Assembly (NCBI GenBank): GCA_977020255.1
Contig: CDROCS010000253.1
Location: 1,240,001-1,304,000 of the forward strand
DNA: 64,000 bases
Direction: 5' to 3'
DNA from: Obrimoposthia wandeli
Lineage: Eukaryota
Below the pieces are notes generated by a model. The model saw only the letters and a list, made by a program, of their open reading frames with translations, was not told where the DNA came from and did not search any database. Of the stretch, positions 3,454-63,455 are shown in pieces. Each line of letters begins with the position of its first letter. Position 1 is the stretch's first letter. The translations under genes were made by a program, and so were the position numbers.

Positions 3454-4089
3454 TTACATCCAACGGCCACTTCGAATAATACCAACGGCAATACCTTCAA
3501 TATTAAATTCTTGATTAGCTAAATCAACTTTAATAGGAGAAAAGTCTTCATTTTCCGGATGTAAATAGACAACATTTCCCTCGCGTTTAAAGCGCTTTAC
3601 CGTGACATCATTTTCAACTCGGGCCACAACCACTTGACCATTTTTTACTTCAGTAGTTTGATGCACAGCCAGTAAATCACCATCTAAAATACCAATATTT
3701 TTCATACTTTCGCCATTAACGCGCAATAGGTAATCGGCAGCTGGATGGAATAAATTACCATCCATTTTATAATGTTCTTCAATATGTTCTTGCGCCAAAA
3801 TAGGTTCGCCAGCAGCAACCCGGCCAATAAGTGGTAAACCTTCTGCTTCAAGCATTTCTTCAACTAAGCGAATGCCACGAGAAGTACCGGCAAGCATTTC
3901 AATATAGCCTTTTTTTGCTAGTGCCTTTAAATGTTCTTCGGCGGCATTAGCTGATTTGAAGCCAAAATATTTCGCGATTTCGGCACGCGTAGGTGGCATA
4001 CCTGTATCTTGAATCTTTACTTTGATTAAATCATAAATCTGTTGCTGTCGATTAGTCAGCGGGCGCAATTCGGTAGTCGAATTTATCAT
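3454..4089 (-). CDS. lexA: SOS repressor LexA
   Basis: PPTRAEIA...[12 protein letters not shown] wHTH, VAAGEP autocleavage site, GESM catalytic Ser, TVKR catalytic Lys. Confidence 0.98.
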
Positions 4090-4502: not shown

Positions 4503-4524
4503 AAGTTAACCATTTACTTAACTT
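4503..4524. promoter_or_regulatory. Putative BauR (LysR) operator 1
   Basis: Palindrome AAGTTAA-N8-TTAACTT about 107 bp upstream of the aminotransferase; near copies at 12102 and 13529. Confidence 0.65.
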
Positions 4525-4630
4525 AACTTTAAAAATATTGACTTTAATAACCTATAAAAACATTGATAATGAAGTCAAGCAATCGCCAAAGGCGAGAAGA
4601 AGTAAGTTGAATAACTTGTGAGGCAACAAA

Positions 4631-5986
4631 ATGATTAACAGCAAAAAAAATAACCACGGCATTAGCCAGGCACAACTTGATGCGCATTGGATGGCATATA
4701 CTGGTAATCGTGAATTTAAAAAAGATCCACGTATTATCGTTTCAGCTAAAGGTAATTATTATACTGATAGTGATGGTCGACAAATCTTTGATGGCCTTTC
4801 AGGACTGTGGACTTGTGGCGCAGGCCATGCTCGCCCAGAAATAACAGAAGCGGTAAGCAAGCAAGTTGCTACATTAGATTATTCACCAGCATTTCAATTT
4901 GGCCACCCTAAGTCATTTGAATTGGCACATCGTATTACCGAACTTATGCCAGAAGGTTTAAACCGCGTATTTTTCACCGGTTCTGGCTCTGAGTCAGTAG
5001 AAACGGCGTTAAAAATCGCTCGTGGCTACTGGCGTAAAAAAGGCATGGCAAGTAAAACGCGCTTTATTGGCCGAGCAAAAGGTTATCACGGTGTGAATTT
5101 TGGTGGTATTAGTGTTGGTGGCATTGGCCCTAACCGTGCACTCTTCGGGCAGGGTATCGAAGCTGGCCATTTGCCACATACTATGATCAGCGACAATAAA
5201 TATGCTAAGGGTATGCCGACACATGGTGCAAATTTAGCAGATGAGTTAGAAGAAATGGTTGCCATGTACGACGCGTCTAATATTGCCGCCGTTATTGTTG
5301 AACCACTTGCTGGCTCAGCAGGTGTTATTCCACCGCCGGTAGGTTATTTAAAACGTTTACGAGAGCTTTGTACTAAACATGATATTTTATTAATTTTTGA
5401 TGAAGTTATTACCGCTTTTGGCCGCATGGGTTCAAATACTGGCGCAGAAGAATTTGGTGTTGTTCCTGATTTAATGACAGTAGCAAAACAACTAACCAAT
5501 GGGGTAATTCCTATGGGTGCGGTTATTGCTAAACAAGAGATTTACGATACTTTCATGGAAACTGGTGGCCCAGAATACATGTTAGAGCTACCGCATGGTT
5601 ATACCTACTCAGCTCACCCTGTAGCGTGCGCCGCAGCATTAGCTTCCCTTGATATTTTAGAAAAAGATAAGTTACCAGCGCGTGTGAAGTCAATAGCGCC
5701 ATATTTTGAAGAAGTATTGCATAGTTTAAAAGGTTCATCGCATATCACTGATATTCGTAACTACGGCTTAGCAGGTGCATTGACTATTGAAGCATTTGGT
5801 GCAGAGCAAGGTCGTGCAGAGCCAGGCAAACGTCCTTATGAAATAGCGCTTAAAATGTGGGAAAAAGGTTTCTATGTTCGTTATGGCGGCGACACTATCC
5901 AACTAGGTTTACCATTTACCACTGAATTATCTGAAATGGATAGTTTAGTCAATGCGCTTGGTGAAACCCTAAACGAAGTTAAATAA
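4631..5986 (+). CDS. bauA: Omega-amino acid/beta-alanine:pyruvate aminotransferase (class III PLP)
   Basis: LDAHWM, FDGLSGLWT, LLIFDEVITAFGR, AKQLTNG (PLP Lys), HGYTYSAHP; resembles Pseudomonas BauA. Confidence 0.88.
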   Translation: MINSKKNNHGISQAQLDAHWMAYTGNREFKKDPRIIVSAKGNYYTDSDGRQIFDGLSGLWTCGAGHARPEITEAVSKQVATLDYSPAFQFGHPKSFELAHRITELMPEGLNRVFFTGSGSESVETALKIARGYWRKKGMASKTRFIGRAKGYHGVNFGGISVGGIGPNRALFGQGIEAGHLPHTMISDNKYAKGMPTHGANLADELEEMVAMYDASNIAAVIVEPLAGSAGVIPPPVGYLKRLRELCTKHDILLIFDEVITAFGRMGSNTGAEEFGVVPDLMTVAKQLTNGVIPMGAVIAKQEIYDTFMETGGPEYMLELPHGYTYSAHPVACAAALASLDILEKDKLPARVKSIAPYFEEVLHSLKGSSHITDIRNYGLAGALTIEAFGAEQGRAEPGKRPYEIALKMWEKGFYVRYGGDTIQLGLPFTTELSEMDSLVNALGETLNEVK

Positions 5987-6088
5987 TAACTAGGTAATAG
6001 CACCGACACGACGACTTTAAAGTCGTTGCAATTAATAACAATTATCCTCGATAAAATAACGGGATAAATAAATTTTAGGAATTATAAA

Positions 6089-7576
6089 ATGACAACTATC
6101 GGCCACTTAATTAACGGTAAAATGATCAATAACGATACTCGAACACAAGACGTATTTAATCCAGCGACTGGTGAAGCAACCAAAAAAGTTGCCCTTGCTA
6201 GCAAACAAACTGTTGAGCAAGCGATTGATGCAGCTGAGGCCGCTTTTCCACAATGGCGTGATACTCCACCAATTAAACGTGCTCGTGTAATGTTTCGTTT
6301 TAAAGAATTATTAGAGCAAAATGCTGATAAAATCTGTGAATTAATTGGTCAAGAGCACGGTAAAATTTCTCATGATGCCGCAGGTGAATTACAACGTGGT
6401 ATTGAAAACGTAGAATATGCTTGTGGTGCACCTGAATTATTAAAAGGTGAGCACAGCAAAAATGTTGGCCCAAACATTGATTGTTGGAGTGAGTTTCAAC
6501 CCCTTGGTGTCGTTGCTGGTATCACACCATTTAACTTTCCTGCCATGGTACCAATGTGGATGTTTCCACTTGCTATTGTTTGCGGTAATACCTTTATTCT
6601 TAAGCCGTCTGAACGTGATCCAAGCTCAACGTTATTCATTGCGCAATTGCTTAACGAAGCAGGTTTACCTGATGGCGTAATGAATGTCGTTAATGGTGAT
6701 AAAGAAGCTGTAGATACATTATTGAGCGATCAACGCATTAAAGCAGTAAGTTTTGTTGGCTCTACGCCAATTGCTGAATATATTTATGCAACAGCAACTG
6801 CTAATGGCAAACGTTGCCAAGCGTTAGGTGGTGCTAAAAACCACGCGATTATTATGCCTGATGCTGATATGGACAATGCAGTAAATCAATTATTAGGAGC
6901 CGCATTTGGTTCATCTGGTGAGCGTTGTATGGCACTTTCTGTTGCTGTTGCTGTCGGTGATGAAGCCGCAGATGCACTAGTTAGTAAAATGACAGAGGCA
7001 ATGAAAGGGTTAAGTGTTGGCGAATATAGTACCGCTAGTAATGACTTTGGCCCAGTGATCACGCAAGCACATTGCGATAAAGTAAATGGTTTTATTGAAA
7101 ATGCACAAGAAGAAGGTGCCACCCTGGTAGTTGATGGGCGTAATCCTGAAGTTGCCGGTTTTGAAAACGGTTTCTTTGTTGGTGCAACGTTAATCGATAA
7201 CGTAACCCAGGATATGTTAAGTTATCAAGCTGAAATCTTTGGCCCGGTTTTACAAGTGGTACGTGTTAAAACGATGCAAGAAGCCATGGAATTAATTAAC
7301 GATCATGAATACGGCAACGGTACTTGTATCTTTACCCGAGATGGTGAAGCAGCACGTTACTTCTCTGATAATATTCAAGTAGGAATGGTTGGTATCAATG
7401 TGCCATTACCTGTACCAGTGGCTTATCATAGTTTTGGTGGCTGGAAACGTTCATTATTTGGTGATTTACATGCCTATGGTCCAGATGGTGTTCGTTTTTA
7501 CACTAAACGTAAAACGATTACTCAACGCTGGCCTTCAAGTGGTATAAGAGAAGGTGCAAGTTTCGCTTTTGCCTAG
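6089..7576 (+). CDS. mmsA: CoA-acylating (methyl)malonate-semialdehyde dehydrogenase
   Basis: ITPFNFPAMVPMW, GGAKNH, GSSGERCMA catalytic Cys, EIFGPV, VGINVPLPVP. Confidence 0.93.
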   Translation: MTTIGHLINGKMINNDTRTQDVFNPATGEATKKVALASKQTVEQAIDAAEAAFPQWRDTPPIKRARVMFRFKELLEQNADKICELIGQEHGKISHDAAGELQRGIENVEYACGAPELLKGEHSKNVGPNIDCWSEFQPLGVVAGITPFNFPAMVPMWMFPLAIVCGNTFILKPSERDPSSTLFIAQLLNEAGLPDGVMNVVNGDKEAVDTLLSDQRIKAVSFVGSTPIAEYIYATATANGKRCQALGGAKNHAIIMPDADMDNAVNQLLGAAFGSSGERCMALSVAVAVGDEAADALVSKMTEAMKGLSVGEYSTASNDFGPVITQAHCDKVNGFIENAQEEGATLVVDGRNPEVAGFENGFFVGATLIDNVTQDMLSYQAEIFGPVLQVVRVKTMQEAMELINDHEYGNGTCIFTRDGEAARYFSDNIQVGMVGINVPLPVPVAYHSFGGWKRSLFGDLHAYGPDGVRFYTKRKTITQRWPSSGIREGASFAFA

Positions 7577-7601
7577 TTAAAAATCAATAGTATTTAACGT
7601 T

Positions 7602-7630
7602 ATCCCCGAATTTATTTTCGGGGATCTTAT
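7602..7630 (+). terminator. Intrinsic terminator after mmsA
   Basis: atccccgaa-N6-ttcggggat followed by a T-rich tract. Confidence 0.75.
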
Positions 7631-8087
7631 TTTTATTTATCAACAATACCCATCAAAAAATTAGGCTGTTGCTCACCAGGCACATAGTCGTTTTTACTCA
7701 CTTCAATTATAACAATGTGAACTGCTTTCACCCTAATTAAAGTGCTTGTCGTCTTACTTGCTCAGCTTTCTTGATGCACGCTTCAGCTCAGTTTAATTAC
7801 CTTTAAATACACTTGACAAGAAGGTTTCTCCCGCTTTAAAAGGATGTCGCTAACGAAAAATTATGGTATTTAATCCGTATCATATTTCTTCAATATTATT
7901 AATCCATCGATTTCGATAGCGTAAACGAGCAAAAGGGATTGCTGTTAAAGGGTTAAAGGGTTGAAAGGTGAGTAACAGTTAGGCTCTGAAACCGTGGGGA
8001 TCTTATATTTAGCATAATGTAACAGTATGGCAATTTATACGAGGGATGATGATAGCAATCAAAAAGCTCAAGGTATGACGAGAGACA

Positions 8088-8714
8088 TCAGTGCTTTCTA
8101 TAGCGATTTGGCAGCTTAATATTGAATATAATAGCCAAAGCACGCAGAATGAAAGCGACAAAGAAACCACCAATCAAATCATAACTATTAGGAAGGTTTA
8201 AGGTACTGAGCCAGAAATATATAACTGAGCCAGCTAGCATCGTGGTGATATAAAGTTCTTCGTTCATCAGTGTTAGGTTACCGCCACAGAGTACATCACG
8301 GGCGATTCCACCAAAGCTAGCGGTCATTACTCCCATACAAATAGCGATCAATGGGGAAGCCTCAAACTCGAGGGCGACCTCAGTGCCAACCACGGCAAAC
8401 AATGCGAGACCAATTGCATCCATCCAGATCAGTGCACGTGTTAGAGAGACAAGTTTTGGAGCGATGATATAGGTTATTGTTGAAGAAATTAGGCAGATTA
8501 CGATCCATAACGGCTCGCGTATCCAGAACACAGGAACATTACCCAGCAGCAAGTCGCGAAGCGTGCCGCCACCAAGACCTGTCGCCGTTCCGATCAGCAT
8601 AAAACCGAGAATATCCATTTTCTGACGAGCTGCATCGAGTGCGCCCGAGGTTGCAAAGACTGCCACAGCAGACAACCCCATGATATTCACTACAGCGGTA
8701 ATATCAAATGACAT
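8088..8714 (-). CDS. TRIC/UPF0126 (YadS/YicG-like) membrane protein
   Basis: Two repeats with GLGGGTLRDLLL and FGGIARDVL, DAIGLALF; ATG at 8714 behind AGGAGA. Confidence 0.88.
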   Translation of the reverse strand: MSFDITAVVNIMGLSAVAVFATSGALDAARQKMDILGFMLIGTATGLGGGTLRDLLLGNVPVFWIREPLWIVICLISSTITYIIAPKLVSLTRALIWMDAIGLALFAVVGTEVALEFEASPLIAICMGVMTASFGGIARDVLCGGNLTLMNEELYITTMLAGSVIYFWLSTLNLPNSYDLIGGFFVAFILRALAIIFNIKLPNRYRKH

Positions 8715-8800
8715 GGCAACTCTCCTAAGACTCTCTGTCTGCGACACCAAAATAGTTTTTATCTTTTAAGCCTAGCAGTTTCATTTGATCAGGCGTTTCT

Positions 8801-8841
8801 AATTCCAGCTGAAACCTGCATCTTCAAGTGGCTTGGGTATA
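8801..8841. repeat. ERIC-like terminal arm (single arm)
   Basis: CTGCATCTTCAAGTGGCTTGGGTATA (8816-8841) resembles the ERIC/IRU right end as I recall it; no partner arm seen at the expected distance. Confidence 0.5.
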
Positions 8842-8948
8842 TTGGTCATGGAAAGATAAAAAACAAGAGATTTTAATGACAGGGAAAGAAAAAACTGACC
8901 AAGCAGATCTAAATGAAGATCTGATTGGTCAGAAAATATTAGTATTTT

Positions 8949-10253
8949 TTACTCAATTCCCATCAATAATCGAGGTAAAAACAATGCCAAATCAGGTACA
9001 AAAGTCACTAAAACAACCATAGGTAAATGACCAAAGCACAATAACTTAACCGTTGGAACAATGTATTTATTAAGCGGTAATTTCGCGACACCTCCGGCCA
9101 TATAGAGCATGGGGGCACAGGGGGGGGAAACATTACCCAAGCCGAGGTTTACCCCTACGATAGCGGCAAAATGAATTGGATGAATGCCAAGAGCCTGTAC
9201 TACCGGCAAGAAAATAATCGCCGCTAAAACACCCCCGGAAATATCATCAACAATCATGCCGATAAGCAGTAATAATAAATTAATCACTAAAAGGATGACT
9301 AGCTTGTTATCAGATAGCATTAATAACGCTTCGGCAAGTTGCTTAGGCACCTGTTCTAAAATCATTGCCCTGCTCATAATAAACAAGAAGAACAGCACGG
9401 CCATAATTGACCCGGTCATAATGACAGCACGAACAGTGGCACTACCTAACGTTTTAAAGGTTAAGCCCTTATAGACGAATAAACTTACTGGGATCGCATA
9501 CATAACAGCAATTGCCGCCGCTTCTGTTGGCGTAGCAATACCCGTATAAATAGCACCTAATATAATAACAGGCATCAACAAGGCCCAAAATGCATTATAG
9601 CCAGAAGTAACTACGCCTCGCGCTGCTTGAACAAAAGGAAGCGCAGGTTCGACTTTTATTAAGGTGTTATTACGTAAAAACCAGAAGTTTAAGCCACAGT
9701 ATATTAGCGTTAACATGATGCCAGGGATAATGGTCGATAAAAAAGCAGCGCCGACAGACAAGCCGCCGGTAATCGAAAAGATGATCATTGGAATGCTGGG
9801 CGGAATTAACAGTGCCAGTACCGACGAACAAGCAACTAAAGCCGTCGCGTGTCCCTCTGGATATCCTTCTTCTTTCATCCTCGGGATCATAATCTGACCG
9901 ATTGCCGCAATAGCAGCCGAAGAGCTACCAGAAATAGCACCAAAAAGTGCACAGGTTAAAACAGTTACTGCGCCTAAGCCGCCTTTAAGACGGCCAACAA
10001 TTGAATTAACAAAATCAAGCAAACGATTTGAAATACCACCTTCGGCCATTAAAATCCCGGCTAAAATAAACAATGGCAATGCTAATAGGGCAAAACCGCC
10101 ACTGGTGTTAAATCCATGAATGACCAAAAATGAAATATCATTGCCGGTAGCAAAAGTGAACATTATTGCGCCGATACCAAAGGCAAAGGCAACTGGCAGT
10201 TCAGCTAATAATAAGATAACTATGATCAGCATACATATGAGAAAAATAGCCAT
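8949..10253 (-). CDS. dctM: TRAP transporter large permease
   Basis: ALPLFILAG, FGAISGSSSA, LIPPSIPMI, GIATPTEAA, PPCAPML. Confidence 0.93.
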   Translation of the reverse strand: MAIFLICMLIIVILLLAELPVAFAFGIGAIMFTFATGNDISFLVIHGFNTSGGFALLALPLFILAGILMAEGGISNRLLDFVNSIVGRLKGGLGAVTVLTCALFGAISGSSSAAIAAIGQIMIPRMKEEGYPEGHATALVACSSVLALLIPPSIPMIIFSITGGLSVGAAFLSTIIPGIMLTLIYCGLNFWFLRNNTLIKVEPALPFVQAARGVVTSGYNAFWALLMPVIILGAIYTGIATPTEAAAIAVMYAIPVSLFVYKGLTFKTLGSATVRAVIMTGSIMAVLFFLFIMSRAMILEQVPKQLAEALLMLSDNKLVILLVINLLLLLIGMIVDDISGGVLAAIIFLPVVQALGIHPIHFAAIVGVNLGLGNVSPPCAPMLYMAGGVAKLPLNKYIVPTVKLLCFGHLPMVVLVTFVPDLALFLPRLLMGIE

Positions 10254-10259
10254 AAAATG

Positions 10260-10868
10260 CTAGTCCTTTCCGTTGTTTAATGATTGAGGTTTAGTTGCTT
10301 TCGAGTGGGCTTTGGCGGCTAACATAGCGCGGTAGTCTTTTACGGTTTGCAGTAGGAAGAAAAATACCATCATCGCAAAACCAAAGATCATACTGCCACT
10401 CCATAATCCTTTAGGCCATTGTAGATAGAGACTCATTCGTCCTTTATCAATGACAAATAGTCCGTATTTAGTTGCATAATAGCCAAAAACACAGGCGGCA
10501 ATGGTACAAATAATAGATACAATAAAGCGGATCATCTCAATTTTAAATGGGTCACTGACAACGAGGCTGACGATACCACCGTGAATATGTGCCCGCTGCT
10601 TAGTTGCATAGCCCATACCGAGAAAATAGATCCATACCGCCATTAAAATTGCAGCTTCTTCTATTCCCGCAAAAGGAGAATCGAGCGCATAACGCATGAT
10701 GACTTGGGTGAACATTAATATGGCGAGTCCAAGGCCGCTAAAAATCATCAGTGCTTTGAGGGAGAAGTCGAGCAAATCTCCAATCTGCTGAAGTACATCT
10801 TTTTTTACTTTTTCTGGTAAATCAACATGCTGTGGCTGACTACCGGATTTTAATTTACTGGTATTCAT
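10260..10868 (-). CDS. dctQ: TRAP transporter small permease
   Basis: 4 TM segments, QVIMRY, EEAA..MAVW..FLG...A.....HI; sits between dctP and dctM. Confidence 0.9.
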   Translation of the reverse strand: MNTSKLKSGSQPQHVDLPEKVKKDVLQQIGDLLDFSLKALMIFSGLGLAILMFTQVIMRYALDSPFAGIEEAAILMAVWIYFLGMGYATKQRAHIHGGIVSLVVSDPFKIEMIRFIVSIICTIAACVFGYYATKYGLFVIDKGRMSLYLQWPKGLWSGSMIFGFAMMVFFFLLQTVKDYRAMLAAKAHSKATKPQSLNNGKD

Positions 10869-10897
10869 AAATACGTCTCCTTATAACGGGAAAATTT

Positions 10898-10929
10898 TGG
10901 GCTAGGTCAGATAAAACTGACCTAGCCCA
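10898..10929. other. Intercistronic hairpin between dctP and dctQ
   Basis: tgggctaggtcag-N6-ctgacctagccca; typical position for an mRNA-stabilising or attenuating stem. Confidence 0.6.
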
Positions 10930-10948
10930 GGTTAATCCTGATAAGGAA

Positions 10949-11974
10949 TTACTTAATACCCGCTATCTCACGCATCATTTTCATGATGTCGCTACCAACC
11001 TTTTTCTCCATATAAGGCCACTCTTTGGCGTACAAAATAGCCTTTGCTTTTGCTCGGTCTTCATCTGATAACTCAATGACTTTAATATCAGCATCGCGCA
11101 CCTTATCTAAAAACCCGTTATCAATCGTCTCTGCTTCCTGCCATGCCCATTTAAGTGTTTCATCAGCAGCCGCTTGCATCTTCTTTCTCTCTGTAGCCGG
11201 AAGATCTTCCCACCAATCTTTATTAACTAACCAGAAAGCGTGCTCAAAATAATCACGGGTTAAAATGTAAGCTTCGAGCACATCACGCATTTGATAGATT
11301 TCAACGGCTGGACCAAATGCACGACCGTCAACAGTACCTAATTGCAGTGCGGTATATAACTCGGAATACGGCATAGGAACCGCAGAAAATCCCCAGTTTT
11401 TAAAACGCTCAATAGCTAGTGGTGATGGGATCACCCGCATTTTTATGCCTTTTGCATCTTCAGGAAAGCTGGTCGGAATTTTATCAACACCTTTACGGAT
11501 GGTTATAGAACCAAAACCGGTTGGGATAGTACCTAGCGCAATCAAATCCATATCGGCAAAAATTTTATTGTAAACATTAAGCATTGGACCACCTGGGCCG
11601 TAAACTTTACGTGCGCTTTCCCAGTCATCAACCACATAACCGAGCCAGGTCAGATCGAGTCGACCATCAAATTCAGATGCACCATAAGTAATAGTCATGG
11701 GAATAACACCCATCATTGCTTGCTCAAACTGGGAGGTCCAATCGCCTAAATCACCACCCGGATGATAATCAGCTTTATAAGAAGAGCCTTTATCCTTGAG
11801 TTGTTCCATGAACTTCACAGAAGTATGATGAAAAATATGTTCGGTGTTATAAGACTGGGCAAAAATGAAGTCATCATCAGCCACTGCCGTATTGATTGCT
11901 GATACACTTAATATTGCAGTAAGGCTGAAAGCACTAATTAGTCTTTTTTTGTTAAATTTAATATTGTTTAACAT
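10949..11974 (-). CDS. dctP: TRAP substrate-binding protein
   Basis: Signal peptide, KGIKMRV (conserved Arg), AVPMPYSELYTALQLGTVDG. Confidence 0.92.
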   Translation of the reverse strand: MLNNIKFNKKRLISAFSLTAILSVSAINTAVADDDFIFAQSYNTEHIFHHTSVKFMEQLKDKGSSYKADYHPGGDLGDWTSQFEQAMMGVIPMTITYGASEFDGRLDLTWLGYVVDDWESARKVYGPGGPMLNVYNKIFADMDLIALGTIPTGFGSITIRKGVDKIPTSFPEDAKGIKMRVIPSPLAIERFKNWGFSAVPMPYSELYTALQLGTVDGRAFGPAVEIYQMRDVLEAYILTRDYFEHAFWLVNKDWWEDLPATERKKMQAAADETLKWAWQEAETIDNGFLDKVRDADIKVIELSDEDRAKAKAILYAKEWPYMEKKVGSDIMKMMREIAGIK

Positions 11975-12101
11975 TGTAATAATCCTCTGTTTTAGGTTTT
12001 ATATGCCTTAAGTCAGAATTATTATTATATTCTGACTTAGGCGAGGTCAATTTGAGTCTCCCATGCTTTATAGTTTAAATAAAAATAAAAAATCATAACT
12101 A

Positions 12102-12122
12102 AAGTTAACTATTTGCTTACCT
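12102..12122. promoter_or_regulatory. Putative BauR operator 2 (TRAP operon)
   Basis: AAGTTAACTATTTGCTTACCT, 18/21 identical to the site at 4503; 128 bp upstream of dctP. Confidence 0.65.
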
Positions 12123-12567
12123 AAAATATCCCCATCTTGATAACTAATATCAAGACTATTAAATTTATTCCCACCATAGAGCTATGTAAGAGGCTCAATA
12201 ATAAGTTAACTTTATTTGGGTATAGACATTCTAACTCTACTGATTATTGTGCTGTTTTATAGCTTCTTACAAGCTCGCGAAGAATCAGTTTAAAAGACTT
12301 AATAAGCGCAATTATTGATTTCGATAAGAACGTAAAAGAGAAGTATATTATTAAATAATGTAGGGGCCATTATCATGAGCATACCCTCCACATGCTCTTC
12401 AATTGTTCTTTTAAGGATTTTAAGTTTCGCTGAGTAGGAAATAATTTAAATGACTTGGTAGAACCATTTGCTCGATTGCTAATTGATCTAGAATCAAGGC
12501 AATGATCATCACTGGATACACACATGGAATTTTAGTAATGGGTATATCATTATTATTTAACGAGGGA

Positions 12568-13494
12568 TTATTTTACCGACTTACTATTGAGTAGCTCCAT
12601 AAAGGCATCTAAAATTATGTTTGAACGGGTACTCTTTTGGACAATAGCCGAGTAATAGCTGGCGATGCGAAATTTAGCTGGTTTTATTGCCCTCATCTTG
12701 CCATCAGTCACCCACTGTTTGGTAAAGTGCGTGGGTAAATAACCAATGTAGCGTCCGGTAAAAATCAAAAAAGCGATGCCTTCACGATCGCTGGCGCTGG
12801 CGCTGCTATTGAGCTTTTGCAACGATCGCTTAATTTCAGGTGTCTGTTGATAAGAGAGTACAACCGCATCAGACTTTGAGATCATCGTGTTGGTCAGTTG
12901 CTTATCGTTGAGGTTAAAATGTGGGTGGTCATTACTGCAATAAAGTAGTGATTCTTCCTGATATAGTTCATGGTAATTGAGGCTGGGCAATAGCCGTAGT
13001 TCCGGTACTACACCGACATGTAACCGTCCATCTATAACATCGACTTCGATTTGATCTGGTGGCATCATCCTGATGTTAATTCGTATTTCAGGTCCTAAAT
13101 CCTTCAATGCCATGAGTGCATTAGTGAGCTGCATGTGCTCGATGGAGACCAAATTATCGGTAATGCCAATATTAAGTTCACCTTTAAGTTGATCATTAAT
13201 ACCATTGACCTGAGTCCGAAATGTTTCTAACGCACTAAGCAGTTCGATAATAGACTGATAAACCTCTGCGCCTTCTTCAGTCAGAGAAAAACCGGTACGA
13301 CCACGCTGACAAAGTTTTAAATTAAGTCGCTGTTCAAGATCTGAAATAGCAATACTGATTGCCGGACGACTAATATTTAATTCGACCTCTGCGGCTGAAA
13401 AGCCTGCACAATCCACTACGGTTTTAAATATACGTAATATACGCAGATCAATATTACTGATCTGGCTTGTGAAAGCTCGCTTTTTAAATGTCAT
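12568..13494 (-). CDS. LysR-family regulator, BauR-like
   Basis: IDLRILRIFKTVVDCAGFSAAEVELNISRPAISIAISDLEQRL...CQRGRTGFSLTEEG, similar to Pseudomonas BauR N-terminus as recalled. Confidence 0.88.
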   Translation of the reverse strand: MTFKKRAFTSQISNIDLRILRIFKTVVDCAGFSAAEVELNISRPAISIAISDLEQRLNLKLCQRGRTGFSLTEEGAEVYQSIIELLSALETFRTQVNGINDQLKGELNIGITDNLVSIEHMQLTNALMALKDLGPEIRINIRMMPPDQIEVDVIDGRLHVGVVPELRLLPSLNYHELYQEESLLYCSNDHPHFNLNDKQLTNTMISKSDAVVLSYQQTPEIKRSLQKLNSSASASDREGIAFLIFTGRYIGYLPTHFTKQWVTDGKMRAIKPAKFRIASYYSAIVQKSTRSNIILDAFMELLNSKSVK

Positions 13495-13528
13495 ATTTCA
13501 CCATTTTTACATGTCATATTTCACCAAT

Positions 13529-13549
13529 AGGTAAATAAACATTTAACTT
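13529..13549. promoter_or_regulatory. Putative BauR operator 3 (divergent LysR/porin region)
   Basis: Reverse complement AAGTTAAATGTTTATTTACCT matches the motif at 4503 and 12102. Confidence 0.6.
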
Positions 13550-13796
13550 AAGTTAATAATGTTTGAATTTATTTAAGTTATCAGCCGATCAAGTATTAGT
13601 CAATATCGACACTAGGGCAACCAATAAGTGGGCTGGGATCTGACTTATCACATTGGCGTTATTCAGCCTCGATATTAAAATGCGGTAACAAAATCTATTT
13701 GAACTAAAAATAATTAATAACTACAGAAAAATAGCACGTAGCTTAATAAATTCCGCGCTTAAAAACATAACTATAACAATATGAATAGGGAACACT

Positions 13797-14852
13797 ATGA
13801 ATAATTTTAACTTTAAAACATCACTACTTACTTTAGCGATTCTGTTACCAACATCTGCAGCCTATGCAGAGACTTCTGAAGAAAGCTTAAAAAAACAGCT
13901 GACAGCAATTCAGATTCGTTTGGCGCAATTAGAGGAATCTAAAAAACCGGCAGCAGATGCAAGTGAAACATCTATCAATTTTTACGGTACTTTACGTCCA
14001 ACTTTTGGTGTTACAAGCAGTGATAGTGCCGATAGCTGGGATGTTGGTGATGCATTATCACGCATAGGTATCGCAGCAGAGCATAAATTAAGTAATGGTA
14101 TGACGGGTTTTGCCAAAGGTGAGTTTAAAGTTCAAATTCAAGGTGATGCGCACTTTGGCGATGCACGTAAAGCTTATGTTGGTATAAAAGGCGATTTTGG
14201 TCGTATTGCCATAGGTAAACAAGATACCACTCAATTCGCCATCATTGCCGGTCCAGTTGATATTTTCAACCGTTCAGCATCACCACTTGCTTATGATGAT
14301 GTTGGCCCATTTCGTCAACAAGAAATGGTTAGCTACAGAAAGAGCTTTGGTAACGTAGATTTTCGTATTGAAGCTCAATTCAAAGGTGAAAGCGATATTG
14401 AAGGTAGTGACTTAGTTAATGGTGGTGTTCAATATACAGGTGAAAGCTTTACTTTAGCTGCTGCTTACTTAACAAAAGATCTTGCTGGAACTGACCAGAA
14501 TACCTTGGGTGTCTCAGCGTCAAAATCATTCGGTGACTGGTATGTTGCTGCAGCTTATCAAGACGTTGACCGCGGTGGTAATGGTCAAGATATCAATACC
14601 ATTGATTTAGTTGGCGCCTATCGTATTAATGAGAGCTACAAGCTTAAAGCGGGCTACTCTTTATTTTCTGATGATTTTATGCCTGCTGATAGTAATGAAG
14701 TTACTCGCTTTAATACCACGTTAGAATGGCAAGGCAGTCCGGATTATCGCTTATTTGTTGAATTTCAAAATAATAATTTTGAAGCTGATAACGCGAGAGA
14801 TAATAATCAACTAATCGTTGGTATGCGTTACAACTTTGATTATAACTTTTAA
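13797..14852 (+). CDS. Gram-negative porin with N-terminal coiled coil
   Basis: Signal peptide, INFYGTLR, SRIG, RKAYVGIKGDFGRIAIGKQ, C-terminal GMRYNFDYNF. Confidence 0.88.
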   Translation: MNNFNFKTSLLTLAILLPTSAAYAETSEESLKKQLTAIQIRLAQLEESKKPAADASETSINFYGTLRPTFGVTSSDSADSWDVGDALSRIGIAAEHKLSNGMTGFAKGEFKVQIQGDAHFGDARKAYVGIKGDFGRIAIGKQDTTQFAIIAGPVDIFNRSASPLAYDDVGPFRQQEMVSYRKSFGNVDFRIEAQFKGESDIEGSDLVNGGVQYTGESFTLAAAYLTKDLAGTDQNTLGVSASKSFGDWYVAAAYQDVDRGGNGQDINTIDLVGAYRINESYKLKAGYSLFSDDFMPADSNEVTRFNTTLEWQGSPDYRLFVEFQNNNFEADNARDNNQLIVGMRYNFDYNF

Positions 14853-14890: not shown

Positions 14891-14932
14891 AAAGATTCAA
14901 AAGGATCAGTTGTTTGATCCTTTTGAATCTTT
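14891..14932. terminator. Bidirectional terminator porin/hutD
   Basis: aaagattcaaaaggatca-N6-tgatccttttgaatcttt between convergent genes. Confidence 0.8.
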
Positions 14933-45846: not shown

Positions 45847-46065
45847 GATTTTAAGGGGACACTATCTAATGTACAATAGGGATAATATAGGTTTCACAAA
45901 AGTGTCATTTACCGGATAAGAATAGATTATAATACTTGTCAATATAAGTTTTTATTTTCAATAGGTTATACCTTTTTATTGGTGTGTTTCTATTTTATAG
46001 TCGCTTTACTGTGTTTTATTTTAGCAAAAGCTAAACTTTTTATTATTTATGAGCAGGAGACTAAC

Positions 46066-61874: not shown

Positions 61875-63455
61875 ATGAGTTTAAATACGGATAAATACAG
61901 TATAGATAATACAGATTATACTGTTGGACAGGATAACATTCAAAAATGGGGATTCGATATACATAATACTGTATTTGGGATCAGTGCTGGTTTAATTGGT
62001 CTTTTTTTAATTGCAATTTTAATTATTGATCCGGCAACATCAAAAGCTTTTTTAGACGGTATAAAATGGCAGATTATAGGAGCATTTGACGGCCTCTTTA
62101 TGTGGTCTGCTAATTTTTTCGTACTCTTCTGTTTGACATTAATTGTCTCTCCTTTCGGTAAAATCCGTTTAGGTGGCGACGATGCAAAAGCGGATCATTC
62201 AAGACTTTCCTGGATAGCGATGCTATTTGCAGCAGGCATGGGGATTGGTTTGATGTTTTGGGGGGTTGCTGAGCCCGTAGCTTATTACACCGGCTGGTAT
62301 GAAACGCCACTTAATGTCATCGCTAATACACCGGCAGCAGCAGAGCTTGCACTGGGTGCAACTATGTTCCACTGGGGATTACACCCTTGGGCAATTTATG
62401 GCGTGGTCGCTTTATCGTTATCCTTCTTTGCTTACAATAAAGGTTTACCGCTTTCCATACGATCTGCTTTTTATCCGATATTAGGAGACCGCACCTGGAG
62501 TTGGCCTGGACATATCATTGATATTTTAGCCGTCATAGCCACATTATTTGGTCTTGCAACATCGTTAGGTTTAGGTGCCCAACAAGCTGCGGGTGGTTTC
62601 CAGCATGTGTTTGGTATTGAAGGCGACCTATCCCTGCAAATCACTATTATTGTCGTGGTTACCATGCTTGCCATTATCTCTGTGGTACGCGGGCTTGAAG
62701 GTGGTGTCAAAGTAATTAGTAATATCAATATGTTAATTGCTGCTGTTTTAGTTGTTTTTGTTGCGCTTGTGACCGCTGCTGTTTCCATGGGTACTATTCC
62801 TACAACCATAATGGGTTATGTTAAGAATATTATCCCGTTGAGTAATCCAGTGGGTCGAGAAGATGAAGCTTGGATGCACGGCTGGACTGTCTTCTATTGG
62901 GCATGGTGGATTTCATGGTCTCCATTTGTCGGTATGTTTATTGCTCGTATTTCGCGCGGCCGTACGGTACGTGAATTTCTTACCGCAGTATTAATTATAC
63001 CAACATCGGTTACTATTCTATGGATGTCTGTCTTTGGCGGCGTAGCTATTGACCAGGTTGTCAATAAGATTGGTACATTGGGCAGCCAGGGCTTAACTGA
63101 AGTTCCTCTTGCGATGTTCCAGATGTTTGATGCACTGCCATTAGGTAATATTTTATCAATGCTTGCTGTGCTGCTGGTACTGGTTTTCTTTATCACCTCT
63201 TCCGACTCCGGCTCACTGGTAATAGATAGTATTACCGCCGGCGGTAAAGTTGATGCGCCGATTCCGCAACGTATTTTTTGGGCATCAATAGAAGGTGCCA
63301 TTGCAGCTGTATTACTTTGGGTTGGTGGTACTGAGGCGATTGAGGCGTTACAAGCGGGTGCAATTTCGACAGCGCTACCCTTTACCATTATTTTATTAAT
63401 AATGTGTGTCAGTTTGTTGATGGGTATGCGCACTGAAAAGCATAATAGCAGGTAG
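61875..63455 (+). CDS. BCCT transporter, probably Na+-coupled betaine type
   Basis: FAAGMGIGLMFWGVAEP (Gly, not the BetT Asp), FHWGLHPWA, WTVFYWAWWISWSPFVGMFIARIS, FFITSSDSGS. Confidence 0.93.
   Translation: MSLNTDKYSIDNTDYTVGQDNIQKWGFDIHNTVFGISAGLIGLFLIAILIIDPATSKAFLDGIKWQIIGAFDGLFMWSANFFVLFCLTLIVSPFGKIRLGGDDAKADHSRLSWIAMLFAAGMGIGLMFWGVAEPVAYYTGWYETPLNVIANTPAAAELALGATMFHWGLHPWAIYGVVALSLSFFAYNKGLPLSIRSAFYPILGDRTWSWPGHIIDILAVIATLFGLATSLGLGAQQAAGGFQHVFGIEGDLSLQITIIVVVTMLAIISVVRGLEGGVKVISNINMLIAAVLVVFVALVTAAVSMGTIPTTIMGYVKNIIPLSNPVGREDEAWMHGWTVFYWAWWISWSPFVGMFIARISRGRTVREFLTAVLIIPTSVTILWMSVFGGVAIDQVVNKIGTLGSQGLTEVPLAMFQMFDALPLGNILSMLAVLLVLVFFITSSDSGSLVIDSITAGGKVDAPIPQRIFWASIEGAIAAVLLWVGGTEAIEALQAGAISTALPFTIILLIMCVSLLMGMRTEKHNSR

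Follow-up and report, generated by a model that had tools for sequence, protein, structure and literature searches.

A 64,000-nucleotide stretch of DNA from the Obrimoposthia wandeli assembly GCA_977020255.1 (contig CDROCS010000253.1, positions 1,240,001 to 1,304,000; hereafter the window, with positions counted from its first letter) carries genes for a beta-alanine-type aminotransferase, a semialdehyde dehydrogenase, a tripartite ATP-independent periplasmic (TRAP) transporter, a LysR-type regulator and an outer-membrane porin, together with three copies of one palindromic operator. We consider it fairly probable that these genes form a BauR-like beta-alanine regulon in which the TRAP transporter imports beta-alanine, and possibly also 3-aminoisobutyrate, in place of the permease BauD. 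What appears to be new here is the TRAP class of transporter for a known pathway and regulator type, the newly defined operator and a predicted new class of TRAP substrate. The window DNA is of Colwellia type, that is, from a cold-marine gammaproteobacterium, as judged from its DctP, which is 92% identical to a protein from a Colwellia metagenome-assembled genome (MAG).

In the mechanism that we propose, the LysR-type regulator would bind AGTTAA-N8-TTAACT, centered about 63 bp upstream of the putative transcription starts, and use a second element near -35 for activation, so that it would switch on both bauA-mmsA and dctPQM in response to a presumed inducer. The two enzymes would convert beta-alanine and pyruvate to malonate semialdehyde and further to acetyl-CoA, with the TRAP system as the high-affinity inner-membrane importer of the pathway substrate, a role held in Pseudomonas by BauD, a permease of the APC type. 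The regulator would repress its own gene via the third site, which in Colwellia probably also drives the divergent porin gene.

Enzymes of the pathway

The product of the bauA-type gene (4631-5986, plus strand; 451 amino acids) scores 708 bits against the NCBIfam AptA equivalog, for which the cut-off is 500. Among solved structures, it reaches 600 bits with 3a8u (the omega-amino acid:pyruvate enzyme of Pseudomonas putida), 597 bits with 4b98 (the beta-alanine-pyruvate transaminase of Pseudomonas aeruginosa) and 590 bits with 4uhm (KES23458 of Pseudomonas sp. AAC), all other class III enzymes scoring at most 291 bits. By these scores it is a BauA-type beta-alanine (omega-amino acid):pyruvate transaminase, as expected of a bau regulon. 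The adjoining mmsA (6089-7576, plus strand; 495 amino acids) encodes a CoA-acylating (methyl)malonate-semialdehyde dehydrogenase (MMSDH) that matches TIGR01722 with 675 bits (cut-off, 448.5) and the structures 4zz7 and 5tjr with 941 and 808 bits, respectively; a terminator-like hairpin lies 3' of the gene (7602-7625, plus strand).

A homologous two-gene operon of Pseudomonas sp. AAC has been shown by experiment to convert beta-alanine via malonate semialdehyde to acetyl-CoA, its dehydrogenase being selective for malonate semialdehyde and BauA-type transaminases being promiscuous (Wilding et al., PMC4907197). A first-pass annotation of this DNA, made from the letters alone, had stated that bauC is missing. 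In light of the TIGR01722 match, the structure scores and this Pseudomonas precedent the statement was mistaken, as the mmsA-type gene fills the BauC role and its product is, by homology, the functional equivalent of BauC. The accompanying statement that bauD is missing holds, since no APC permease (AA_permease) occurs in the cluster or among the window's open reading frames (ORFs) of at least 380 amino acids.

The same annotation had placed the transported substrate among beta-alanine and related omega-amino acids or precursors. From that set we retain beta-alanine and 3-aminoisobutyrate, given the pairing of the transaminase with a (methyl)malonate-semialdehyde dehydrogenase. Three other candidates are argued against: gamma-aminobutyrate, because the dehydrogenase falls far below the cut-off of the succinate-semialdehyde dehydrogenase model; taurine, because its breakdown would call for another downstream enzyme; and ureidopropionate, because the required hydrolase is absent from the conserved gene set.

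Three operators in the window

Exact matches to AAGTTAA-N3-TTT-N2-TTAMCT are found at 4503-4523 (plus strand), 12102-12122 (plus strand) and 13529-13549 (minus strand), the three places where the motif had originally been noticed. Its core is a 20-bp palindrome, AGTTAA-N8-TTAACT, which is near-perfect at site 1 and has one half reading TTACCT at sites 2 and 3. Operator 1 (4504-4523; AGTTAACC-ATTT-ACTTAACT), a candidate recognition site ahead of the aminotransferase operon, is centered 118 bp 5' of the aminotransferase ATG (4631). Candidate operator 2 (12103-12122) lies ahead of dctPQM, with its center 138 bp 5' of the dctP ATG (11974, minus strand), and candidate operator 3 (13529-13548) lies between the LysR and porin genes, centered 45 bp 5' of the LysR ATG (13494, minus strand) and 258 bp 5' of the porin ATG (13797).

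Since the pattern comes from these same three sites in an AT-rich genome, the motif might be a chance similarity or the site of another regulator. With up to two mismatches allowed, however, the window contains six matches where dinucleotide shuffles lead one to expect 0.47, and none of 100 shuffles reaches six; one of the six is the reverse reading of palindromic site 1, and two are two-mismatch hits within coding sequence. We also scanned the 64 kb with a palindromic position weight matrix (PWM) trained on orthologous promoters, counting hits of at least 15 bits as strong. Only operators 1, 2 and 3 reach this threshold (26.1, 25.1 and 19.0 bits, respectively), and because nothing else exceeds 12.5 bits, the score of the next best hit at 46018, the motif is no frequent AT-rich word. 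Frequent random occurrence, which the first-pass annotation had named as evidence that would count against its proposal, is therefore not what we observe. Considering in addition that the motif is conserved at fixed distances in more than 10 genera and that its presence or absence tracks the type of LysR (see below), we regard another origin of the motif as very improbable, chance in particular being effectively refuted by the shuffles and the cross-genus conservation.

An extra AAGTTAAC half-site is present about 100 bp upstream of operator 2, with which it forms a 14-nt inverted repeat (12097-12110/12204-12217). In the same long spacer between LysR and dctP, about 260 bp are flanked by a 27-nt imperfect inverted repeat (12148-12174/12434-12460), which may be the remnant of a small mobile element.

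Conservation of the operator and promoter layout

For the comparison with relatives, we collected the contexts of DctP homologs and then 80 loci (one genome per species), onto which the window proteins were mapped by tblastn. The window-only consensus, at up to two mismatches, matches 66 of 83 regions upstream of dctP or aminotransferase genes when the closest Colwellia are left out, and its match rate is 4.4e-3 per position in these regions versus 1.7e-4 in the rest of the 1.29 Mb. Across the 80 loci, 76 of the 88 PWM hits of at least 15 bits precede dctP, the aminotransferase gene or LysR, and several of the other 12 precede a bauA gene that is cut by the contig end. The PWM scan that the first-pass annotation had proposed, applied here to the window and to relatives, thus yields three strong sites in the window and a palindrome that recurs across marine Gammaproteobacteria, in more than 10 genera including Colwellia, Moritella, Psychromonas, Neptunomonas, Motiliproteus, Marinobacterium, Amphritea, Pontibacterium, Oceanospirillum, Neptuniibacter, Endozoicomonas and Halopseudomonas. 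The operator center is located 105 to 160 bp 5' of the dctP start, 95 to 165 bp 5' of the aminotransferase start (23 loci) and 14 to 36 bp 5' of the LysR start, the last distance being 58 to 90 bp in loci with divergent LysR and aminotransferase genes.

When 42 dctP and 23 aminotransferase promoters are aligned by anchoring them on the palindrome, a second conserved element with the core ATTTA appears about 33 bp downstream of the palindrome center, and about 54 bp downstream of that center there is a -10 box resembling GATAAT or CAGAAT. The conserved columns read 'ttTgaATTTAataA' and 'ttgatAAt' in the aminotransferase promoters and 'aaATTTAac.AA' and 'gCAGA.T' in the dctP promoters, each at fixed spacing. 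In the window, the bauA promoter (4537-4570, plus strand) comprises the second element TTGACTTTAATAACC (4537-4556), a candidate activation site near -35, and the -10 box GATAAT (4565-4570). The dctP promoter (12055-12086, minus strand) comprises the second element ATTTTTATTTAA (12086-12075) and a -10-like GAGACT (12060-12055). Transcription would then start at about 4577 for bauA and about 12048 for dctP. LysR-type promoters have a recognition site near -65, an activation site near -35 and autorepression. Counted from the putative starts, the palindrome lies at about -63 and the second element at about -35, and a further site overlaps the 5' region of the regulator gene at the regulator's own promoter, which is the layout of a LysR-type operator.

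A generic promoter scan returned 36 sites versus 33 expected. The dctP promoter that it suggests (12050-12021) was passed over, being conserved in Colwellia and Moritella only, and the cross-genus -10 element was preferred. In genomes of the Colwellia demingiae or C. psychrerythraea type, the operator ahead of bauA is a run of half-sites (AGTTAAGTAAA) with a 12-bp phase (L010:252, L011:325-368 and L012:578-609), resulting in two or three overlapping palindromes.

The LysR-type regulator

The regulator gene (12568-13494, minus strand) encodes 308 amino acids with HTH_1 and LysR_substrate domains. The motif is present in loci whose LysR shares 49 to 86% identity with the window protein; in the Vibrionaceae, where LysR is 33 to 39% identical, it is absent despite the same enzyme and TRAP genes. 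Because the presence or absence of the motif tracks the LysR type in this way, we propose that it is the binding site of the type found in the window. Nearly all loci with a LysR gene of this type have an operator site ahead of that gene, with or without a porin gene, and this site is expected to be autoregulatory. Many genera have the LysR ortholog and the aminotransferase gene in divergent orientation. No NCBIfam equivalog covers the window LysR, and a 60%-identical homolog has been named 'transcriptional activator for bauABCD operon' by the Joint Genome Institute (JGI).

A 23-bp tandem duplication (13481-13526; copies 96% identical) extends over the region of the LysR start codon. It introduces a decoy ATG, which opens a short ORF in another frame, and shifts the operator from 21 to 45 bp before the real LysR start; other Colwellia lack the duplication and have the operator center 21 bp from the LysR start.

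The TRAP transporter and its predicted ligand

The transporter is encoded on the minus strand in a single operon: dctP (10949-11974) for the solute-binding protein, which matches PF03480 and NF037995, dctQ (10260-10868) for the small permease (PF04290, 75.6 bits) and dctM (8949-10253) for the large permease (TIGR00786, 341 bits versus a cut-off of 268; PF06808). DctP has a signal peptide, the fold of TRAP binding proteins in its predicted model (TM-scores of 0.76 to 0.79 to solved ones) and, invariant within a 'KMRV' motif in 72 homologs, Arg180, which we take to be the carboxylate-binding arginine of the TRAP solute-binding family. With the classical dctP model TIGR00787 it scores 71.8 bits, below the cut-off of 175, and with a solved C4-dicarboxylate DctP (9dsy) only 56.7 bits; an invariant 'DGRAFGP' takes the place of the canonical 'DGQEN' motif. 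By these measures the protein is outside the classical C4-dicarboxylate range and belongs to an uncharacterized subfamily. The doubt that the first-pass annotation cast on the default C4-dicarboxylate label is borne out by this low score and by the context of beta-alanine catabolism.

Gene linkage points to what is transported. In the main DctP clade, both enzyme genes occur within 10 kb of dctP in 25 of 33 fully flanked loci, and either that linkage or the operator is found in 30 of the 33. In the Vibrionaceae (L008 and L077-L083), LysR is followed by a divergent run of aminotransferase, MMSDH, DctP, DctQ and DctM genes on one strand, and the same one-strand order of aminotransferase, MMSDH and DctPQM is seen in loci of the Paraglaciecola/Pseudoalteromonas type (L018-L020); in both groups the run is apparently a single operon. 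Since these two are the only enzymes that accompany it constantly, what it imports should be the direct substrate of the transaminase, and we predict beta-alanine or 3-aminoisobutyrate as the DctP ligand.

DctP has a well-supported sister clade, whose members precede an MMSDH-family gene of their own (509 amino acids; 453.7 bits versus the cut-off of 448.5) in a DctPQM-MMSDH-like operon. Because this clade also precedes an MMSDH-family gene, the whole DctP family would be tied to compounds degraded via (methyl)malonate semialdehyde. Sister and main clades coexist in Amphritea, Marinobacterium and Pontibacterium, and the sister-clade DctPQM may carry a second beta-substituted acid.

It could be that the regulon is real and the TRAP system carries some other acid, such as pyruvate or another 2-oxo acid as amino acceptor, malonate, 3-hydroxypropionate or malonate semialdehyde, while beta-alanine enters via another carrier. 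For most of the known TRAP binding proteins the ligand is an organic acid, and Arg180 demands a carboxylate only; the altered 'DGRAFGP' motif nevertheless implies a non-standard pocket. The literature mentions a TRAP system for malonate (MatPQM), the Marinobacterium jannaschii locus has a malonate-decarboxylase-like gene nearby, and the sister clade has its MMSDH-family gene without an adjacent transaminase gene. In the main clade, by contrast, the constant partners are the transaminase and the semialdehyde dehydrogenase only, on the TRAP strand in two locus groups. With a non-amino substrate the transaminase would be pointless, and the cluster has no second conserved transporter, so that we consider import of another acid unlikely.

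Equally unlikely, in our estimation, is that the main substrate is 3-aminoisobutyrate, or a broader range of beta- and omega-amino acids, with propionyl-CoA formed via methylmalonate semialdehyde. The dehydrogenase family handles both malonate and methylmalonate semialdehyde, the transaminases are promiscuous as noted above, and the coexistence of two DctP clades in three genera suggests split specificities. The characterized homologous dehydrogenase is nonetheless selective for malonate semialdehyde, and beta-alanine is said to be both inducer and substrate of bauRABCD in P. aeruginosa PAO1.

Beta-alanine import under a BauR-like regulator, the reading that we favor, has several points weighing against it. 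To our knowledge, no TRAP binding protein for a plain zwitterionic beta-amino acid has been described, and our literature search, within the library of papers that it covered, returned no paper linking a TRAP transporter to beta-alanine. DctP is at most 24% identical to solved structures (best, 4p47). In Foldseek, its AlphaFold model (pLDDT 76.9) retrieves only generic TRAP binding proteins, again at no more than 24% identity, and it gives no ligand-level information. Orthology of the window LysR with BauR (PA0133) is likely, though based on the automatic name given above. In addition, the palindrome TTAA-N8-TTAA is a T-N12-A with an even center and departs from the T-N11-A core of LysR-type sites, and Colwellia sp. 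MB3u-8 and MB02u-6 have no recognizable operator ahead of dctP.

Sister-clade loci (L090/L091, identical with L075/L060; 10001-15000) also contain a MocR/PdxR-like regulator gene and, nearby, panC, which encodes pantoate-beta-alanine ligase. Strong operator-like palindromes are present away from bau genes at L060:19454 (21.0 bits) and L067:18341 (18.5 bits), both sister-clade loci; the former is located in the spacer upstream of panC.

The porin and the PF03458 protein

The porin gene (13797-14852, plus strand) encodes 351 amino acids of the Porin_4 family (PF13609, 99 bits) and is followed by a strong terminator hairpin (14891-14932, plus strand). We consider it probable that the porin belongs to the regulon. 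On its side of operator 3, TTTGAATTTA occurs at the exact spacing of the second element and is like the 'ttTgaATTTA' of the aminotransferase promoters. The candidate promoter (13562-13599, plus strand) thus comprises the second element TTTGAATTTATTTAAG, which resembles that of the aminotransferase promoter, and the -10-like TATTAG (13594-13599), which reads TATAAG in other Colwellia. The DNA from operator 3 to about 13612 is almost invariant in five Colwellia, and the remainder of the spacer diverges; the porin transcript would have a 5' leader of about 190 nt.

The porin is linked to the cluster in Colwellia only. Moritella has the same LysR-proximal site without a porin, which makes site 3 first of all a LysR autoregulatory site. 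It might serve autoregulation alone, with the porin a mere neighbor under its own control, and this alternative deserves serious weight, though it seems to us the less probable one. The 258 bp between the site center and the porin start codon, and the presence of porin homologs in unrelated operons elsewhere, agree with it. The second element at target-promoter spacing inside a nearly invariant block speaks for inclusion of the porin, as does the gene order in genomes of the Colwellia demingiae type (L010-L012), where the porin lies between LysR and bauA: the order there is bauA, the operator cluster in front of it, the porin and then, divergently, LysR-dctPQM. Relative to this order, the bauA-mmsA pair of the window has moved to the far side of dctPQM.

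Homologous porins on other small-amino-acid operons also favor inclusion, since regulon-specific porins seem to be usual. The family is restricted to Colwellia, Psychrobium, Shewanella, Pseudoalteromonas and Ferrimonas. In two lineages, a homolog (72% and 62% identity, respectively) is located directly 3' of gcvH-gcvP, with a sodium:alanine symporter (Na_Ala_symp) nearby, and a third, from Shewanella livingstonensis, is located 3' of asparaginase, aspartase, DcuA and fumarate reductase genes (homolog loci, L092 8001-9110, L094 8001-9050 and L093 8001-9053). This distribution suggests regulon-specific porin paralogs attached to small-amino-acid operons, which agrees with the porin part of the first-pass idea without proving it. 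The core of that idea, a BauA-type pathway under a common LysR operator with a TRAP system that replaces an APC permease, gains strong support from the conserved operators, the linkage and the one-strand runs; the porin link is weaker and is confined to Colwellia.

In Colwellia-type loci only (L001, L010, L011 and L017), a gene for a PF03458 ('Gly_transporter') membrane protein is found 3' of dctM, in the window at 8088-8750 on the minus strand (Pfam, 144.8 bits), and it may be part of the dctPQM transcript. Because beta-alanine is the next homologue of glycine, the protein could by analogy be an accessory channel or exporter. Rfam detects no glycine riboswitch ahead of this gene.

Comparison with known systems

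The bauRABCD genes of P. aeruginosa are the nearest likeness: both systems have a LysR-type regulator, next to the transaminase gene in bau, a beta-alanine:pyruvate transaminase and a malonate-semialdehyde dehydrogenase. They differ in that uptake relies on a three-part TRAP system (and, in Colwellia, a porin) in the window and on the APC permease BauD in bau, that no bauB-like gene was noted in the window cluster and that the window genes fall into three transcription units with one operator for each. We know of no description of the Pseudomonas bau operator sequence. The transaminase and 'MMSDH' genes also correspond to the two-gene operon KES23458/KES23460 of Pseudomonas sp. AAC, for which no transporter or regulator is described (PMC4907197).

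On the transport side, the ectoine TRAP systems TeaABC and UehABC share the binding-protein fold, and TeaA and UehA rank among the best hits of the predicted model by TM-score (0.79/0.86 and 0.78/0.85, respectively), the small differences among hits indicating no specific relationship. Their substrates combine a carboxylate with a cationic nitrogen; the window DctP is only about 19% identical to them and differs in its predicted ligand and in regulation. With classical C4-dicarboxylate DctPQM systems it shares the three-component architecture and the Pfam families, and it departs from them in the sub-cut-off dctP score, the 'DGRAFGP' motif, the beta-alanine catabolism context and the lack of dctBD-type control genes. 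The operator follows LysR-type promoters in its layout and differs from their T-N11-A sites in the even 8-bp spacer and, in some Colwellia, in half-sites with a 12-bp phase.

Implications for TRAP transporters and outer-membrane entry

A wider proposal, which we offer tentatively and hold at somewhat less than an even chance, is that the main and sister DctP clades constitute the first TRAP solute-binding family for beta-amino acids, in marine Gammaproteobacteria, and that porin paralogs in Colwellia and relatives have been wired one by one into small-amino-acid regulons. If true, uptake would be substrate-specifically regulated at both membranes, with separate porins for the beta-alanine, glycine cleavage and aspartate/fumarate regulons. 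That one porin family has repeatedly become attached to small-amino-acid operons may point to regulation of how such solutes cross the outer membrane. TRAP transporters carry 'C4-dicarboxylate' as their default label, and real substrates are known for few subfamilies; here, a bounded and widespread subfamily comes with a specific ligand prediction that is cheap to test. Polyamines, pyrimidines and dipeptides yield beta-alanine when broken down, and a high-affinity binding-protein route for it would bear on the scavenging of dissolved organic nitrogen by cold-marine and sea-ice heterotrophs. The defined operator and promoter layout of the LysR regulator would be usable as a beta-alanine-responsive switch.

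Surrounding genes and related loci

The gene set sits amid unrelated genes, with lexA (3454-4089, minus strand) on the left and hutD and thiamine genes on the right. Rfam finds neither a riboswitch nor a known RNA in the cluster, and elsewhere only the expected thiamine pyrophosphate (TPP) riboswitch ahead of thiC. The only other large carrier of amino compounds among the window's long ORFs is a transporter of the BCCT (betaine/carnitine/choline) family (61875-63455, plus strand), which lacks an operator.

In a related Colwellia MAG (L001, 14066-16337), genes for a PF03601 membrane protein and an IclR regulator are inserted between the PF03458 gene and mmsA; both are absent from the window. 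The same MAG has an alanine dehydrogenase gene beyond the porin, likewise absent from the window, and this enzyme would regenerate pyruvate from the transaminase product. Finally, some copies of the cluster carry surprising taxonomic labels: MAGs labeled 'Flavobacteriales' and 'Shewanella' have Colwellia-like copies (80% and 96% identity), and a MAG labeled 'Dehalococcoides' has a copy with 55% identity (L018, L017 and L089), all of which look like binning errors or transfers.

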